A stretch of DNA of 64,000 nt from Macrostomum lignano. Taxonomy: Eukaryota. Location: contig NIVC01000491.1 of the NCBI GenBank assembly GCA_002269645.1, forward strand, positions 62,001-126,000, read 5' to 3'. This document shows, in pieces, positions 9,098-58,796 of this stretch. Under the pieces are notes generated by a model, which was given only the letters and a program-made list of their open reading frames with translations, did not search any database and was not told the origin of the DNA. The stretch's first letter is position 1. Every line of letters begins with the position of its first letter. A program made the translations under genes and the position numbers.

Positions 9098-10147
9098 ACA
9101 TACGGACACGTGACAACAACTGTAACCGCAGCACTGTGCAGTACAGAGGGACTTTATAAATTGCGACCTTTCTGCACAATTTTCACTCTGGCCTGGCAAC
9201 TATTGAACACAATGGACTGTTTTGTCCCACGTTTCTTCTATCCCAGGAAATGCAGGCGGAAGATGTTAGCGTAGTGCATGAATTTACAATGACTGACTGA
9301 CTGACTGGCTGACTTGGCATCACTGCCAAACTATCTGCCTATTTTTCTCTAATATTTGTCAAAGATTTTTTCTTTTACATTTTCCCTCGATAAAACTGTC
9401 TATCTCCGAATTTCAACTTGGAATTCATTCAAACTTCTCTCTTTTCTTCATACACTTTCTCTCCCAGGAGAATAACCACCGCCCAAAGATAGATAGGATG
9501 CTTGTTTGCCAGACCAGGATGAAGAGTTAGCAGCAAAGGTTTGCTTGATCTTTCTTCCCCTTGGCGAACACTTCTTCTCCCTTATAGCCATAGTCGGCCA
9601 TAAAAAGATTCAAGAGGGAGGAAGAAGAAGTGCTTGGGAGGGAGGGTTGGTTAGAAATCGGCTCGATTTGATTTTGCCAGAGCCTATATAGGTCCAATAG
9701 ATTGGAGTCCCATCTCATCCCCCCAGCCCCAGAGCACGGGGAAGGCCCATCTCGATCAGATCTGTCGGAGTTGGCGGCATGGTAGTAACTTTGAGGAGTG
9801 AGCAGTGGGGGGGGGGGTGAGGGAAATTAATGAGGAGAAAGAAAGTTTAAATCTTTGGGCCCCGGGTGCTGCTGCATCATGGCTAAGCTTCTATTCGGGT
9901 ATATTCGATTCCCTCATCTTGCTATAAAATAATCTAAATCTTCCTGCTTCATCCGCTTATTTAAGCTCGGCGCCTCAGTCTCACAGCCTCAAATGAATGC
10001 AACAGGGAAAGCTATATTGATAGATAAAAGAAATATAGGAATGAAGATCCCGCACGCGCTGGCTATCCCTATATAGTTGATACTCGAAATCCGGATGGCT
10101 TAATTGAGTTTTTCGTGGGCCGGGCGCCTGATAGAAGGGAAACGCGG

Positions 10148-10159
10148 GGACAGAGAGAG

Positions 10160-10208
<49 letters not shown>

Positions 10209-10219
10209 GAGAGAGAGAG

Positions 10220-10303
<84 letters not shown>
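10148..10303. repeat. (GA)n microsatellite
   Basis: Interrupted GA run. Confidence 0.95.
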
Positions 10304-10947
10304 GAGATCAGATCACGTGACGCATAGCAAGGTGGCTGAAGGAAGACGAAAAGGGGGAAAGGAAGAGGCAAAGATTTTCGCCAAAGCGAATACCGAACAG
10401 TTAAAAGAGTTAAAAAGGTTGGAAGGAGGGAGAATTGATGAGGCAGAGAGTTTGGACGGCTTCCTAGAAACCCAACCCCCCCTCAGTCCCCAGCCCATTT
10501 CGCTTAGCGGCGTTAATCTAATTCGCATGAAATACTCCCCTCCGAGTCGGGCGGGGGTTGAGGGAAAATTTGAGAAGATATCTCTGTAGGGCCTCTTCTC
10601 TCTTCTTCTGCTTTTTTGCTTGGAGAGATTAAGTTGTGCGTCGAGGGAAACGACGCGGCTTTTTCTTCTTCTTTTTAACCGCCCGCGCGAAGTCTCGAGT
10701 TTCCTTCGACTCTCGCGTTTTAGTTTGTTTTTTTCCTTTAGTGCGATAAGTTTTTCACCCCCCTATATTCCTAGGTAATATCCCCAATCAACCATGATGT
10801 ATTACGTTGGCGCAATTAATCGGGTAAAAAAGGCTGAATTACTGTAGCCATCTGCTGTCTTGATTTGTGTATATGGCTTCTAGTTGCAATTTCTTGATTC
10901 ATCTGCTTCACTTATAGTAAGACTTTGATTTTCAGTGATTAATACTG

Positions 10948-11905
10948 TTTCAGTGATCCGAGTCTGTGCTTCAGTGACCCGAGTCTGTGCTTCAGTGACC
11001 CGAGTCTGTGCTTCAGTGACCCGAGTCTGTGCTTCAGTGACCCGAGTCTGTGCTTCAGTGACCCGAGTCTGTGCTTCAGTGACCCGAGTCTGTGCTTCAG
11101 TGACCCGAGTCTGTGCTTCAGTGACCCGAGTCTGTGCTTCAGTGACCCGAGTCTGTGCTTCAGTGACCCGAGTCTGTGCTTCAGTGACCCGAGTCTGTGC
11201 TTCAGTGACCCGAGTCTGTGCTTCAGTGACCCGAGTCTGTGCTTCAGTGACCCGAGTCTGTGCTTCAGTGACCCGAGTCTGTGCTTCAGTGACCCGAGTC
11301 TGTGCTTCAGTGACCCGAGTCTGTGCTTCAGTGACCCGAGTCTGTGCTTCAGTGACCCGAGTCTGTGCTTCAGTGACCCGAGTCTGTGCTTCAGTGACCC
11401 TAATCTGTATTTCAGTGACCCCAAATCTTTATTTCAGTGACCCCAAACTGTGTTTCAGTGACCATAATCTGTGTTATCTGTGTTTCAGTGACCCCAAACT
11501 GTATTTCAGTGACCCCAATCTGTATTTCAGTGACCCCAATCTGTATTTCAGTGACCCCAAACTGTATTTCAGTGACCCCAAACTGTATTTCAGTGACCCC
11601 AATCTGTGTTTCATTGACCATAATCTGTGTTATCTGTATTTCAGTGACCCCAATCTGTATTTCAGTGAGACCAAACTGTATTTCAGTGACTCCAATCTGT
11701 GTTTCAGTGACCCCAATCTGTATTTCAGTGAGACCAAACTGTATTTCAGTGACTCCAATCTGTGTTTCAGTGACCCCAATCTGTATTTCAGTGTGACCAA
11801 ACTGTATTTCAGTGACTCCAATCTGTGTTTCAGTGACCTCAGTCTGTATTTCAGTGACCCCAAACTGTATTTCAGTCACCCCAATCTGTATTTCAGTGAC
11901 CCCAA
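10948..11905. repeat. Minisatellite, 21 bp unit TTCAGTGACCCGAGTCTGTGC grading into TTTCAGTGACCCCAATCTGTA
   Basis: A perfect block to ~11400, then a diverged block ending ~20 nt from the Musashi exon 5 donor. Confidence 0.95.
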
Positions 11906-45787: not shown

Positions 45788-46155
<368 letters not shown>

Positions 46156-51252: not shown

Positions 51253-51336
51253 TCTCAATAAAAACGTGAATTATTATCACGCTCAATTGATGCCCTAATT
51301 TTCACACGAGCACCAGTTACACAAACGGCACAAACA

Positions 51337-51822
51337 ATGTCCGGTTGCCTTGACAACGTTCGCCTACCAAAATGCGACTGCTCAGCGGTGCGGCCGTATC
51401 GCAATTTAATCTCCAGCATTCTGGGCGGCTGCCTCGTCTCCATCGGCTGGTGGATCATGATCGATGCAGCCGCTGGTTATCCGTCGCAGTCGGAGATGCA
51501 CCACGCGGTGCACACGTGCGGAGTGCTGGCTACTGTAGCGGTGTTCATGGTTAACTCTATTAGCAATGGCCAGGTGACTGGCAGTGACACCTACACTGAC
51601 GGCTGCTTTGGGCAGAATGCTGCCAGACTGTGGCTATTCTTGGGCTTCATCTTGGCTTTCGGATCGCTGATTGCATCAGTTTGGATTCTATTTGGCGTGT
51701 ACGTTGGGCCGCAGAAGTCTCCTATGTGGCCGGGTGTTGCTATCTTCCTGCAGAATGGCTTTATCTTTGCCGGCAATATGATCTTTAAATTTGGTCGCTC
51801 AGAGGAGTTGTGGGACGACTAA
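51337..51822 (+). CDS. TMEM50: Transmembrane protein 50 (UPF0220/Vps68 family), 161 aa, single coding exon
   Basis: GWWIMIDAA, HTCGVLAT, VNSISNGQV, GCFGQNAARLWLFLGF, FLQNGFIF, KFGRSEELW match TMEM50A/B end to end. Confidence 0.95.
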   Translation: MSGCLDNVRLPKCDCSAVRPYRNLISSILGGCLVSIGWWIMIDAAAGYPSQSEMHHAVHTCGVLATVAVFMVNSISNGQVTGSDTYTDGCFGQNAARLWLFLGFILAFGSLIASVWILFGVYVGPQKSPMWPGVAIFLQNGFIFAGNMIFKFGRSEELWDD

Positions 51823-52102
51823 TTAGAGTCGAAATACGCAACTCTGCACAGCGTTAAAAATTTAGCGTCAAAACCTGTAGACAAAACTGGAATTGACATA
51901 ACTATTTTTCTATATGCTTATGATTATTGAAATCTGTGGCGATTGTTGTACCTCTCTTGTAAATTATTTCTGTTTATATGTCGTATGTCTCTTTTTGCTG
52001 CTTTCAAAACAAAGCTTCTTTTAAAAATAAGATACCTACTTACCAGCAGAAATTTGATCTTAACTTACTCACTTTTTTGAAGTCCTCATCCTAAAAATTG
52101 AC

Positions 52103-53045
52103 TCTAATCCACCCTGAGAATCGGCTCTAATCCACCCTGAGAATCGGCTCTAATCCACCCTGAGAATCGGCTCTAATCCACCCTGAGAATCGGCTCTAAT
52201 CCACCCTGAGAATCGGCTCTAATCCTCCCTGAGAATCGGCTCTAATCCTCCCTGAGAATCGGCTCTAATCCACCCTGAGAATCGGCTCTAATCCACCCTG
52301 AGAATCGGCTCTAATCCACTCTGAGAATCGGCTCTAATCCACCCTGAGAACCGGCTCTAATCCACCCTGAGAATCGGCTCTAATCCACCCTGAGAATCGG
52401 CTCTAATCCACCCTGAGAATCGGCTCTAATCCACCCTGAGAATCGGCTCTAATCCACCCTGAGAATCGGCTCTAATCCACCCTGAGAATCGGCTCTAATC
52501 CACCCTGAGAATCGGCTCTAATCCACCCTGAGAATCGGCTCTAATCCACCCTGAGAATCGGATCAAATCCACACTGAGAATCGGCTCTAATCCACCCTGA
52601 GAATCGGCTCTAATCCACCCTGAGAATCGGCTCTAATCCACCTGAGAACCGGCTCTAATCCACATTGAGAATCGGCTCTAATCCACCCTGAGAATCGGCT
52701 CTAATCCACATTGAGAATCGGCTCTAATAAATTCTTAGAATCGGCTCTAATCCACCCTGAGAATCGGCTCTAATCCACCCTGAGAATCGGCTCAAATCCA
52801 CACTGAGAATCGGCTCTAATCCACCCTTAGAATCGGCTCTAATCCACCCTGAGAATCGGCTCTAATCCACCTGAGAACCGGCTCTAATCCACATTGAGAA
52901 TCGGCTCTAATAAATTCTTAGAATCGGCTCTAATCCACCCTGAGAATCGGCTCTAATCCACCCTGAGAATCGGCTCTAATAAATTCTTAGAATCGGCTCT
53001 AATCCACCCTGAGAATCGGCTCTAATCCACCCTGAGAATCGGCTC
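52103..53045. repeat. 23 bp satellite GAGAATCGGCTCTAATCCACCCT (array 1, ~40 copies)
   Basis: Same unit as 58797-61680. Confidence 0.96.
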
Positions 53046-53504
53046 TGTTGTATTTAAAAAATAGTTTCTTAAATCAAGGGCATTCAATTAAATCATTTCG
53101 TGACAGAAAAACTTGTATTCTTCAAAATATTCAGTTTTCTTGTTAACCTGAATTATAGATTTTTAGCTATTAAGCATCAATTTGCTTGCTAAGAATAAAA
53201 TTGTAGTTTTGTTACCGTTTATCCTGACTTGGCTTTCTTATTGGCCTAAGAAAGTTAATTCGTTTTGGGCACAAAATTTGTGTATTAAATATTTCTTGTG
53301 TAATCACATTGAGTGCTTTACTGTTTATTGTCAATAATTTTTGTCGATTTTACAGAATAATCATTCTGTTTCAATAATCTCTGTAGCGGTTTTTTGAAAC
53401 GTTTTAATTCTGTCATGGGTTCTGAGGCATCTATTCAGTAAGGGTAAGACTTTGAAAATTGTAACAATTAAACAAACTTAGAATGAAACCAGCAATCTAG
53501 TGCC

Positions 53505-54298
53505 CCCCTCCTCAGAAATTCCCCCCGTGAGCCTTGACATCTCAGCAATTCCCCCTGAAAACCTTGACATCTCAGCAGTTCCCCCCGTAAGCCTTTACAT
53601 CGCAGCAATTCCCCCAGAAAATCTTGACATCTCAGCAATTCCCCCAGAAAACCTTGAAATCTCAGCAATTCCCCCAGAAAACCTTGACATCGCAGCAATT
53701 CCCCCAGAAAACCTTGAAATCTCAGTAATTCCCCCAGAAACCTTGAAATCTCAGCAATTCCCCCTGAAAATCTTGAAATCTCAGCAATTCCCCCTGAAAA
53801 CCTTGAAATCTCAGCAATTCCCCCTGAAAACCTTGAAATCTCAGCAATTCCTCTTGAAAATCTTGACGTCTCAGCAATTCCCCCAGAAAACCTTGACATC
53901 GCAGCAATTCCCCCTGAAAACCTTGACATCTCAGCAATTCCCCCTGAAAACCTTGACATCTCAGCAATTCCCCCTGAAAACCTTGACATCTCAGCAATTC
54001 CCCCTGAAAACCTTGAAATCTCAGAAATTCCCCCTGAAAACCTTGACATCTCAGCAATTCCCCCTGAAAACCTTGAAATCTCAGAAATTCCCCCTGAAAA
54101 CCTTGACATCGCAGCAATTCCCCCTGAAAACCTTGACATCGCAGCAATTCCCCCTGAAAACCTTGACATCGCAGCAATTCCCCTGAAAACCTTGAAATCT
54201 CAGAAATTCCCCCTGAAAACCTTGACATCGCAGCAATTCCCCCTGAAAACCTTGAAATCTCAGAAATTCCCCCCTCCCCCGTGAGCCTTGGCATCTCA
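53505..54298. repeat. 30 bp minisatellite GCAATTCCCCCTGAAAACCTTGACATCTCA
   Basis: Period 30. Confidence 0.94.
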
Positions 54299-54627
54299 GC
54301 AAATTTACGCTTTTAAGGTTATGGAAGCTCGTTTTAAATGGTTATAAAATTTGCCTTTTTACGAGCGTACGCGTGTACTATTTTTCAGCAAGTTAAGTTA
54401 AACGTTTGAAGTTTTCCTGTTGAACCTAACAATACATTGCAGAAAGCGCCGTAACTTTTTATAGAATTTCTATGCACTGACACTACAGACTCCTCTCTCA
54501 GTCGGAGTTTGCCGTTTAATTTGTGAAATATATAAAAATTAATCAGTTTTTATCAGTTCACGCATACATGATCAGCTGTGATTGTTATTGCTTTTAATTG
54601 CTTTTAACTGTTAGATCTCTGTGCCCG

Positions 54628-55545
54628 TTATCTCTCTTTATCCCTACCCGTTATCTCCCTCTACCCCTACCCTTTATCTCCCTATATCCCTACCCGTTAT
54701 CTCCCTCTACCCCTACCCTTTATCTCCCTATATCCCTACCCGTTATCTCCCTCTATCCCTACCCGTTATCTCCCTCTACCCCTACCCTTTATCTCCCTAT
54801 ATCCCTACCCGTTATCTCCCTCTACCCCTACCCTTTATCTCCCTATATCCCTACCCGTTATCTCCCTCTACCCCTACCCTTTATCTCCCTATATCCCTAC
54901 CCGTTATCTCCCTCTACCCCTACCCTTTATCTCCCTATATCCCTACCCGTTATCTCCCTCTATCCCTACCCGTTATCTCCCTCTACCCCTACCCTTTATC
55001 TCCCTATATCCCTACCCGTTATCTCCCTCTACCCCTACCCTTTATCTCCCTATATCCCTACCCGTTATCTCCCTCTATCCCTACCCTTTATCTCCCTCTA
55101 TCCCTACCCGTTATCTCCCTCTATCCCTACCCGTTATCTCCCTCTATCCCTACCCGTTATCTCCCTAAATCCCTACCCGTTATCTCCCTCTATCCCTACC
55201 CGTTATCTCCCTCTACCCCTACCCTTTATCTCCCTATATCCCTACCCGTTATCTCCCTCTATCCCTACCCTTTATCTCCCTATATCCCTACCCGTTATCT
55301 CCCTCTATCCCTACCCGTTATCTCCCTCTATCCCTACCCGTTATCTCCCTCTATCCCTACCCGTTATCTCCCTAAATCCCTACCCGTTATCTCCCTCTAT
55401 CCCTACCCGTTATCTCCCTAAATCCCTACCCGTTATCTCCCTCTATCCCTACCCGTTATCTCCTTCTATCCCTACCCGTTATCTCCCTTTATCCCTACCC
55501 TTTATCTCCCTCTATACCTACCCGTTGTCTCCCTCTCCCTGCCCG
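54628..55545. repeat. 22-23 bp minisatellite CCCTACCCGTTATCTCCCTCTAT
   Basis: Tandem copies with alternating variants. Confidence 0.93.
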
Positions 55546-55848
55546 TTATCTCTCACTCTCATCTCCCCAGCTTCCTTCGATACTTCCTTAACGAAACAGT
55601 CAAAATTTTCCTTTGATCTTCAGATTTTTTCGATCCGTTTTTTCCGGATCGAATTTCGCTCGTTTAGTTAAATAGTTTTTTTTCTTACCGTCATTCCACC
55701 TGATCTTATAATCTCCTAACCGAATCCTTTGATCGTATCTGATTTCGTTTTTGAGTCTTCTTCTTTGAATCCTCTTCCGGGCAAAAACAGGCAACAGAGA
55801 GAAAAAAGATAAATCGCTGTTTCTGCTGTCTTTTCTTCTGTACTGCAG

Positions 55849-56204
55849 AGCACTAAAATTCGAGCCGTTAGCCTCGCCGCAGGCGGCAGCTGGACTAGCT
55901 TCATCATCGCTACTAGATGGAGCTTAACAACCCACGGTGTTGTAGCAACTCGATTCGGGCATCACCATCAGCAGCATCTGCTGCATCGCTGCTGGCTCAG
56001 CTCTGCCTCGCGTAGAAACCGGCCAAACTATCCTGCGCTGGATGAGTCCGCTATTCGTGAGCAGTTTGTGAGCGGCTCCGGCCCCGGCGGGCAGAAGATT
56101 AACAAGACTCAGAATAAGGTGAAATTCTATATTGTAGAGACTGTAGCCTGTGTAGGCGTAGTTTTGATATCCAATTCTACAGACAGACAGACAGACAGAC
56201 AGTC

Positions 56205-56252
<48 letters not shown>

Positions 56253-56318
56253 CAGACGGACAGACAAGACAGATAGTCAGACAGACAGACACTAAGACAG
56301 ACACTAAGACAGACACTA

Positions 56319-56369
<51 letters not shown>

Positions 56370-56382
56370 TAGACAGACAGTC

Positions 56383-56423
<41 letters not shown>

Positions 56424-56446
56424 GGCAGGCAGACAGACAGCCAGAA

Positions 56447-56519
<73 letters not shown>

Positions 56520-56522
56520 CTA

Positions 56523-56585
<63 letters not shown>

Positions 56586-56618
56586 TAGACAGACAGACAG
56601 ACAGACCGACAGACAGAC

Positions 56619-56655
<37 letters not shown>

Positions 56656-56678
56656 GGCAGGCAGACAGACAGCCAGAA

Positions 56679-56743
<65 letters not shown>

Positions 56744-56746
56744 CTA

Positions 56747-56809
<63 letters not shown>

Positions 56810-57409
56810 TAGACAGACAGACAGACGGACGGACAGACAGACAGACAGACAGGTAGATTCAGCATCATCGCGTGAACACGTTTCCCAGTGTAACCATATC
56901 TCAATTCGGTGCTTCTCTTTGTTTAAGTCTATCTAATCTCGTTCCTCTCATCCATTCTCTTATCGACTTAACTATCATTATCTAACCTACGTAGTGACAT
57001 CTATCCTCATTTCCTCTCATCTACTCTCTACTCATCCCTTCTCATCTACTCTCATCAATTCTCATATAATATGTTCTCTTCCCAGGTAGTCCTGACCCAC
57101 CTGCCCACGGGCACTGTGGTGCACTGCCAGGAAACCAGGTCCCTACACGAGAATCGTCAAATCGCCCGTCGCCGCCTTCAAGAGAAGCTGGACGTTCTCA
57201 TCAACGGCGAACACGCCGCCTCGGTGGTGGCCGAACGAGAGCGTCGAGCTCAGGACCGCTACGAGCACGGCAGGAGCGTGTCCCGGCTGCAGATGAAACT
57301 GCGACTCAAAGAGGAGCTCGCAAATCGGCTGCCGCAGCGGCTGGAGACGCCTCCGAGCATGGACGAGGGTGGCGAAGCTGATAGTAACAGCGGCTCTGAT
57401 GGTCGATGA
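55849..57409 (+). CDS. MTRFR: Mitochondrial translation release factor in rescue (C12orf65), GGQ peptidyl-tRNA hydrolase
   Basis: Exons 55849-56118 and 57086-57409 (phase 0). [20 protein letters not shown]|[36 protein letters not shown], followed by a basic C-terminal helix. The start codon is unresolved because there is no in-frame ATG (see findings). Confidence 0.9.
56180..56851. repeat. (GACA)n microsatellite in the MTRFR intron
   Basis: Interrupted GACA run. Confidence 0.95.
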
Positions 57410-57449: not shown

Positions 57450-58425
57450 ACCTCTCTCCGTAGATCTCTTATCTCACCCCGTAAATCTCTTTATCTCATC
57501 CCGTAGATCTCTTATCTTACCCCGTAGATCTCTTTATCTCATCCCGTAGATCTCTTATCTTACCCCGTAGATCTCTTTATCTCATCCCGTAGATCTCTTA
57601 TCTTACTTCGTAGATCTCTTAGCTAACCCCGTAGATCTCTTTGTCTCATCCCGTAGATCTCTTATCTTACCCCGTAGATCTCTTTATCTCATCCCGTAGA
57701 TCTCTTATCTTACCCCGTAGATCTCTTTATCTCATCCCGTAGATCTCTTATCTTACCCCGTAGATCTCTTTATCTCATCCCGTAGATCTCTTATCTTACT
57801 TCGTAGATCTCTTTGTCTCATCCCGTAGATCTCTTATCTTACCCCGTAGATCTCTTTATCTCATCCCGTAGATCTCTTATCTTACCCCGTAGATCTCTTT
57901 ATCTCATCCCATAGATCTCTTATCTTACCCCGTAGATCTCTTTATCTCATCCCGTAGATCTCTTATCTTACCCCGTAGATCTCTTTATCTCATCCCGTAG
58001 ATCTCTTATCTTACCCCGTAAATCTCTTTATCTCATCCCGTAGATCTCTTATCTTACCCCGTAGATCTCTTTATCTCATCCCGTAGATCTCCTATCTTAC
58101 CCCGTAGATCTATTTATCTCATCCCGTAGATCTCTTATCTTACCCCGTAGATCTATTTATCTCATCCCGTAGATCTCTTATCTTACTTCGTAGATCTCTT
58201 AGCTAACCCCGTAGATCTCTTTGTCTCATCCCGTAGATCTCTTATCTTACCCCGTAGATCTCTTTATCTCATCCCGTAGATCTCTTATCTTACCCCGTAG
58301 ATCTCTTTATCTCATCCCGTAGATCTCTTATCTTACTTCGTAGATCTCTTAGCTAACCCCGTAGATCTCTTATCTCCACAGTAGATCTCTTATCTCCACC
58401 AGTTGATCTCTTATCTCACCCTGTG
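57450..58425. repeat. 43 bp dimeric minisatellite GTAGATCTCTTTATCTCATCCC-GTAGATCTCTTATCTTACCCC
   Basis: Alternating 22 and 21 bp subunits, starting ~40 nt after the MTRFR stop. Confidence 0.93.
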
Positions 58426-58796
58426 GATGTCTATTCTCACCCCCCCCCCCAAAATCTTCTATTTTATCTTGGCCCGTAGATTTTAATCACAACTTACCCA
58501 CAGATCTCGATCTTATCCCATCTAGTATATCTCCTATCGCATCTCACCCTTCCCTTAGATCTCCTATCTTTAATGTCGCTGATCTTCAACTTACGTTTTA
58601 ACCAGTGTCTTTCAATTTGAAATACTCTGGCACTGCCAATAACTTGTACAGAATCTGGTATTTGAATTTGGTAATCATTAAAATAAATATACACGACTGA
58701 CCTAATAACAGATTCAATTGTCAAGGTGTGCCTGTTTTGGCTTGTAAATTCGTGTCTTCGGCATTGAGATTACCTGATTATTGATTATCAGTTGGC

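Follow-up and report, generated by a model that had tools for sequence, protein, structure and literature searches.

A mitochondrial rescue factor gene of Macrostomum lignano without an ATG of its own, and the likely use of the spliced-leader AUG

Where does translation begin on a gene whose first coding exon contains no in-frame ATG? The question is raised by a locus of Macrostomum lignano, located in the window analysed here, a stretch of 64 kb from contig NIVC01000491.1: the gene, BOX15_Mlig015902g1, is annotated as 5'-partial, and the suffix "g1" of its locus tag presumably marks it as first within a transcriptional unit. A preliminary description of the window had named the product MTRFR and proposed that its start codon is donated by a spliced leader, provided that the organism is a flatworm, as it proved to be. 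The reading favoured here, to which a probability of about 70% is assigned, is the same: MTRFR lacks a start codon of its own, and most likely borrows the AUG of the trans-spliced leader. The proposal is supported by an AUG-ending leader, by the acceptor motif, by its phase 0 and by the finding of three gene copies, all devoid of a suitable ATG.

Structure of the gene and identity of its product

The annotated gene range, 10001-11549 of locus L001 (whose base 1 is window base 45861), corresponds to positions 55861-57409 of the window. The frame running from 55810 to 56118 on the plus strand reads IAVSAVFSSVLQ up to the acceptor and STKIRAV...KTQNK after it, with one stop, the TAA at 55810..55812, 13 codons 5' of the acceptor, and no Met; the only ATGs in this interval, at 55917 and 56042, are both out of frame. 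Re-reading of the frame agrees, therefore, with the earlier statement that no in-frame ATG is present between the TAA and the donor at 56119. The acceptor, described as strong and in phase 0, is found at 55821..55848 (ttctgctgtcttttcttctgtactgcag), where a 20-nt pyrimidine tract precedes CTGCAG, and is the proposed site of leader addition. Coding exon 1 (55849..56118, plus strand, as for all the features reported below) comprises exactly 90 codons, none of them ATG, so that the acceptor is indeed in phase 0; it contains the GGQ catalytic motif (GGC GGG CAG, 56086..56094), invariant in the MTRFR protein alignment.

A single GT...AG intron of 967 nt (56119..57085) follows, with its acceptor AG at 57084-57085; a (GACA)n microsatellite, with about 168 units (56179-56852), accounts for its bulk. 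Coding exon 2 (57086..57409) encodes the remainder of the RF-1 domain and the C-terminal tail, down to the TGA at 57407-57409; its end coincides with that of the annotated gene range. The in-frame ATGs of exon 2 encode Met 160 and Met 182, both C-terminal of the GGQ domain: starts at these codons could not yield a functional protein. A further ATG, at 57071-57073, belongs to the frame of exon 2 and is located within the intron, 15 nt from its 3' end; a transcript retaining the intron, or internally initiated, would give a fragment devoid of GGQ, probably of no significance.

MTRFR is a small, GGQ-containing protein, similar to release factors, which rescues stalled mitochondrial ribosomes, working with MTRES1 on split large mitoribosomal subunits. 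The spliced product of the locus is 100% identical to PAA82159.1, [quoted passage not shown], and its 197 genome-encoded codons fall within the MTRFR size range of about 140-220 residues. When the spliced product was searched against Pfam, one domain was found above the cut-off, RF-1 (PF00472, E=2e-22), and PF03462, the family of codon-recognition PCRF domains, was not matched. The best PDB matches are human C12orf65 (7a5h_C, E=1e-26) and its mouse counterpart (2rsm_A, E=5e-23); bacterial and mitochondrial RF1/RF2 score E=5e-11 or worse, and no chain named ICT1 or MRPL58 is present among the 45 PDB matches at E<=1e-3. In the profile search, the top matches, from many animals, are named MTRFR/C12orf65 ("mitochondrial translation release factor in rescue"); among the 120 matches listed, out of 6378, none comes, by name, from a flatworm other than M. 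lignano. On the basis of the Pfam domain, the best structural matches and the names of the profile matches, the gene is identified as the MTRFR/C12orf65 orthologue, as originally claimed.

Like its mammalian counterparts (7a5h chain C; 2rsm), the predicted protein features one RF-1/GGQ domain and lacks domains for codon recognition. The conserved core begins at about codon 53: residues 53-166 align with residues 44-157 of human C12orf65, over 114 residues, and are preceded by a non-conserved N-terminal extension of 52 residues, to be compared with 43 in the human protein. Since core residue 53 is aligned to human residue 44, an N-terminus starting at the acceptor would produce a protein of normal architecture. 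Two differences stand out: the human gene features its own ATG, while the M. lignano gene does not, and the C-terminal tail of the M. lignano protein ends in an acidic, Ser/Gly-rich sequence, while most orthologues end Lys-rich.

The 64 codons following the acceptor had been reported to contain neither Asp nor Glu, and the first acidic residue is indeed found at codon 65. The preceding stretch includes 8 R/K, 6 H and 14 S/T, is also rich in A/L, and resembles a mitochondrial presequence. If a D+E content of 11.5% is assumed to be typical, a run of 65 residues devoid of D/E has a probability of about 4e-4, which becomes 2.5e-5 at the D/E content of the MTRFR protein itself; the N-terminus shows a modest helical amphipathic moment. 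In its composition, the stretch fits a putative N-terminal presequence, which may direct the product to mitochondria.

Three copies of the gene

Two additional copies are present in the assembly, Mlig022593g1 (L002) and Mlig023541g1 (L003), both annotated as partial, and located in the same gene neighbourhood as the window copy (L001), between an upstream UPF0220 gene and, on the other strand, a downstream EF-hand gene. Alignment of 640 bases around exon 1 shows 97% identity among the three copies, and no indels in the exon; given such similarity, the weight of their agreement is limited in evolutionary terms. All 3 copies share the TAA, the pyrimidine tract with its AG and the CAG/AGC junction, and each features 197 open codons and no ATG before the GGQ domain. 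Introns differ in length (967, 1263 and 1087 nt), with conservation of the flanking intron sequence.

The lack of an ATG might also be an artefact, where an assembly indel hides a frame truly starting at the ATG in 55917..55919, as had been considered in the preliminary description, or a sign that the copies are decaying pseudogenes. The genome is rich in repeats and was assembled from long reads, and the older ML2-based models (P0002, P0003, P0004, P0066) are full of frameshifts. The three loci, however, were assembled separately, and show an identical frame without indels in exon 1; the ATG is found in the window copy only, being replaced by GTG in L002 and by GCG in L003, and its frame is closed by a TAG after 33 codons. 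Since the other two copies lack this ATG, and one frame is common to all three, the indel alternative fails and a start at 55917 is ruled out.

As for the decay of the genes, the comparison of L001 with L003 reveals only 2 differences out of 228 nt in the GGQ-domain codons 61-136, both synonymous; 13 out of 298 nt differ upstream, 12 out of 227 in the intron, 7 out of 180 in the presequence and 16 out of 183 in the C-terminal tail. All 13 nonsynonymous changes lie outside the GGQ domain, and nucleotide divergence of the domain is about 5-fold lower than that of the flanking non-coding DNA (Fisher p≈0.01). Such a pattern argues that the domain is under purifying selection, and that the copies are functional genes, likely constrained in the core and only loosely at both ends. 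With 197 codons kept open in all copies, and the GGQ domain constrained, pseudogene status is also ruled out; on the whole, it is very improbable that an artefact or a dead gene accounts for the missing ATG.

Two observations concern ATGs found in other copies or models. In L003, a C-to-A change at 9975-9977 (corresponding to 55826-55828 of the window) creates an out-of-frame ATG within the pyrimidine tract, at a distance of 23 nt from the exon; trans-splicing at this site would remove it as part of the outron. Outside the window, P0004 (UniProt A0A1I8F953), an MTRFR model from the older ML2 assembly, features an unrelated, Met-containing N-terminus, followed by 42 identical residues: it could represent either a fourth gene copy, featuring an ATG of its own, or a model that was wrongly assembled.

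The upstream region and the gene models

On the same strand, MTRFR is preceded by a UPF0220/TMEM50-like gene, located at 51298-51822 (L001 5438-5962). Most of the 4026 nt between the end of this gene and MTRFR are occupied by three tandem arrays, for a total of 2637 nt (52102-53046, 53511-54273 and 54624-55552, with units of 23, 30 and 23 nt); a fourth array, with units of 43 nt (57458-58443), starts about 50 nt 3' of the MTRFR stop codon. The arrays contain 23-41 copies of their units, with 90-92% matches. The sequence between the third array and the exon (55553..55848), the presumed outron, is non-repetitive, pyrimidine-rich and 96-99% identical between copies; in the window copy, no ATG is found in any frame in these last 296 nt before the acceptor. 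Such repeats are subtracted from intergenic distances in the cited part of the M. lignano operon paper (PMC8629364): without the three arrays, the distance between UPF0220 and MTRFR is about 1.39 kb, which exceeds the 1-kb operon threshold given there (PMC8629364), and leaves membership of MTRFR in an operon unsupported.

This region is where an ATG would have to be found, if the gene models were truncated and a real 5' exon, further upstream, were joined by cis-splicing to the acceptor ending at 55848, a case already raised in the preliminary description. The acceptor, by itself, does not separate cis- from trans-splicing, and the upstream 4 kb consist mostly of tandem repeats, where the assembly of transcripts is described to break (PMC8629364). 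Moreover, many M. lignano coding sequences are 5'-partial for trivial reasons. The upstream UPF0220 gene is itself annotated with a 5'-partial CDS (IFTRAPVTQTAQTMS...), although its model is not directly preceded by an AG and features an in-frame ATG 12 codons in. Since a gene with its own in-frame ATG carries it, the 5'-partial flag is not specific: in this assembly it is often trivial and, taken alone, is weak evidence.

Against a cis-spliced 5' exon, only 10-12 ATGs per copy are present in the interval up to the preceding gene, which measures 4.0-4.5 kb in the different copies. Every ATG-initiated open stretch, ending in phase 0 at a GT, was considered in all three copies: none of these stretches, in the interval to the neighboring gene, is followed by a donor resembling the GT[G/A]AG consensus. 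The one candidate exon shared by two copies is weak: it comprises 18 codons (MVIKFAF...QQ), ends at CAA followed by GTTAAG, and is missing from the third copy. An upstream exon would also extend an N-terminus which already has the length of the human MTRFR extension. Without a usable donor, and with the candidate lost in the third copy, the upstream exon is unsupported.

Gene models lead to the same indication. An upstream exon is missing from all five independent ones, derived from the three loci and from the older assembly. P0066, an older UniProt model, starts at the acceptor (STKIRAV), P0078 starts 3 nt after it (TKIRAV), P0001 and P0077 12 nt after it (RAVSL); of the transcript-based models, only P0002, another older one, extends upstream, reading 3 codons through the acceptor. 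Models of the current copies and P0066 start, therefore, 0-12 nt after the acceptor, and a cis-spliced ATG exon, for which no credible candidate is found in the intergenic region of any copy, is considered unlikely.

The position of these ends may be read in the light of the annotation pipeline, where the leader is trimmed off the reads before mapping, transcripts are cut at the resulting peaks (TBONE) and ORFs are called by TransDecoder, according to the section cited (PMC5730564). From such a procedure, a trans-spliced gene without an ATG would emerge with its CDS flagged as 5'-partial and opening at the acceptor, a picture to which the MTRFR models come close; imprecision of the pipeline is the only attribution offered for the 3- and 12-nt offsets. 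Annotated trans-spliced genes of M. lignano (Wudarski 2017; Grudniewska 2018; Ustyantsev & Berezikov 2021) share with MTRFR both the [T/C]TNCAG acceptor and a model whose 5' end is located at it. In the available text of the same three papers, no discussion was found of translation starting at the leader AUG.

The spliced leader as a source of the start codon

A single spliced leader of 35 nt, CGGTCTCTTACTGCGAAGACTCAATTTATTGCATG, is reported for M. lignano: it ends in ATG, and is followed by GTAAG in the SL RNA gene (PMC8629364). Its 3' end is ...AATTTATTGCATG, and the expectation, expressed before the organism was identified, of a leader ending in AUG is borne out by the published ...TTGCATG (PMC8629364). 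About 30% of M. lignano genes are described as trans-spliced, and the motif enriched at their acceptors is [T/C]TNCAG (PMC8629364): the CTGCAG of MTRFR fits it. Phase 0, for its part, arises by chance in one acceptor out of three. Taken together, the motif, the phase, the absence of alternatives and the ends of the gene models point strongly to trans-splicing at 55848/55849. Use of the leader AUG as the start codon is suggested, in turn, by the lack of any other suitable AUG and by the Schistosoma precedent.

A leader RNA gene was not found within the 64-kb window. Searches for direct traces of the joined transcript gave no matches: the leader-exon junction, TGCATGAGCACTAAAATTCGAGCC, has no exact match in metagenome contigs. 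The 90% protein cluster is composed of three genome-derived NCBI entries, with no transcript-derived member; neither the gene ids nor the name C12orf65 were found in the supplementary files of four M. lignano papers or in the full texts searched.

Translation starts at codons other than AUG are, in general, inefficient. They would nevertheless make the gene independent of the leader, if a near-cognate codon were used, such as the CTG at 55843, on an unspliced mRNA, or the ATT at 55858. In-frame near-cognates are indeed available (CTG 55843, ATT 55858, ATC 55903 and ATC 55906), and non-AUG initiation is documented in organisms featuring spliced leaders, as stated in the cited text (PMC9851317). 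Yet transcript-based models, with the exception of one older model, stop short of the CTG at 55843, and a leader ending in AUG, together with a matching acceptor in phase 0, offers a simpler route. Such a start is regarded as quite unlikely, even more so than a cis-spliced upstream exon.

According to the favoured reading, initiation at the leader AUG, the pre-mRNA would undergo trans-splicing at the AG whose last base is 55848, with removal of the outron and attachment of the 35-nt leader. The terminal AUG of the leader would then be placed, in frame, directly before AGC, the first codon of exon 1 at 55849, from where the joined sequence is predicted to continue as AGCACTAAAATTCGAG... Translation from the donated AUG would yield a precursor of 198 residues, M-STKIRAV..., where the first 50-65 residues or so, basic and devoid of acidic side chains, would act as a mitochondrial presequence ahead of the GGQ domain. 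Once the precursor is imported into mitochondria, the GGQ domain would act in ribosome rescue. Without addition of the leader, no AUG would be able to give a protein containing the GGQ domain.

Initiation at a leader AUG is an established mechanism in flatworms (Cheng et al. 2006, via PMC9851317; PMC12582326), and every flatworm leader reported, in the text of the latter source, ends in ATG (PMC12582326). In Schistosoma, 28% of the trans-spliced mRNAs carry the leader AUG in frame, and it is required by more than 40 cDNAs (Cheng et al. 2006, quoted in PMC9851317). The MTRFR locus shares several features with these "slORFs", as they are presented in the cited text (PMC9851317; Cheng, Cohen, Ndegwa & Davis, J Biol Chem 2006): an AUG-ending leader, an acceptor in phase 0, and a recipient exon without an in-frame AUG, so that the protein may be made only after leader addition. 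It differs in that slORFs are experimentally documented in Schistosoma mansoni, while the junction and the translation of M. lignano MTRFR are deduced from sequence. The organisms are also different, M. lignano being a free-living macrostomorph, within the rhabditophoran flatworms.

One may speculate that dependence on the leader AUG is a fixed and selected state of Macrostomum MTRFR, kept in three homeologous copies, that it couples the quality control of mitochondrial translation to the availability of the leader, and that P0004 is a leader-independent paralogue; such an extension is considered unlikely. If it were true, the supply of the rescue factor would be a read-out of trans-splicing activity, reportedly enriched among neoblast genes.

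Leaving this aside, MTRFR is an instance of a mechanism known since 2006, rather than a new phenomenon, and nothing is changed in the knowledge of either trans-splicing or MTRFR. What the locus offers is a clean and checkable case, where a conserved gene with a single function would produce a leader-dependent protein, in a model flatworm amenable to transgenesis. Models of such genes enter the databases flagged as "partial", and will be mis-annotated or dropped by automatic pipelines, unless the leader AUG is added.
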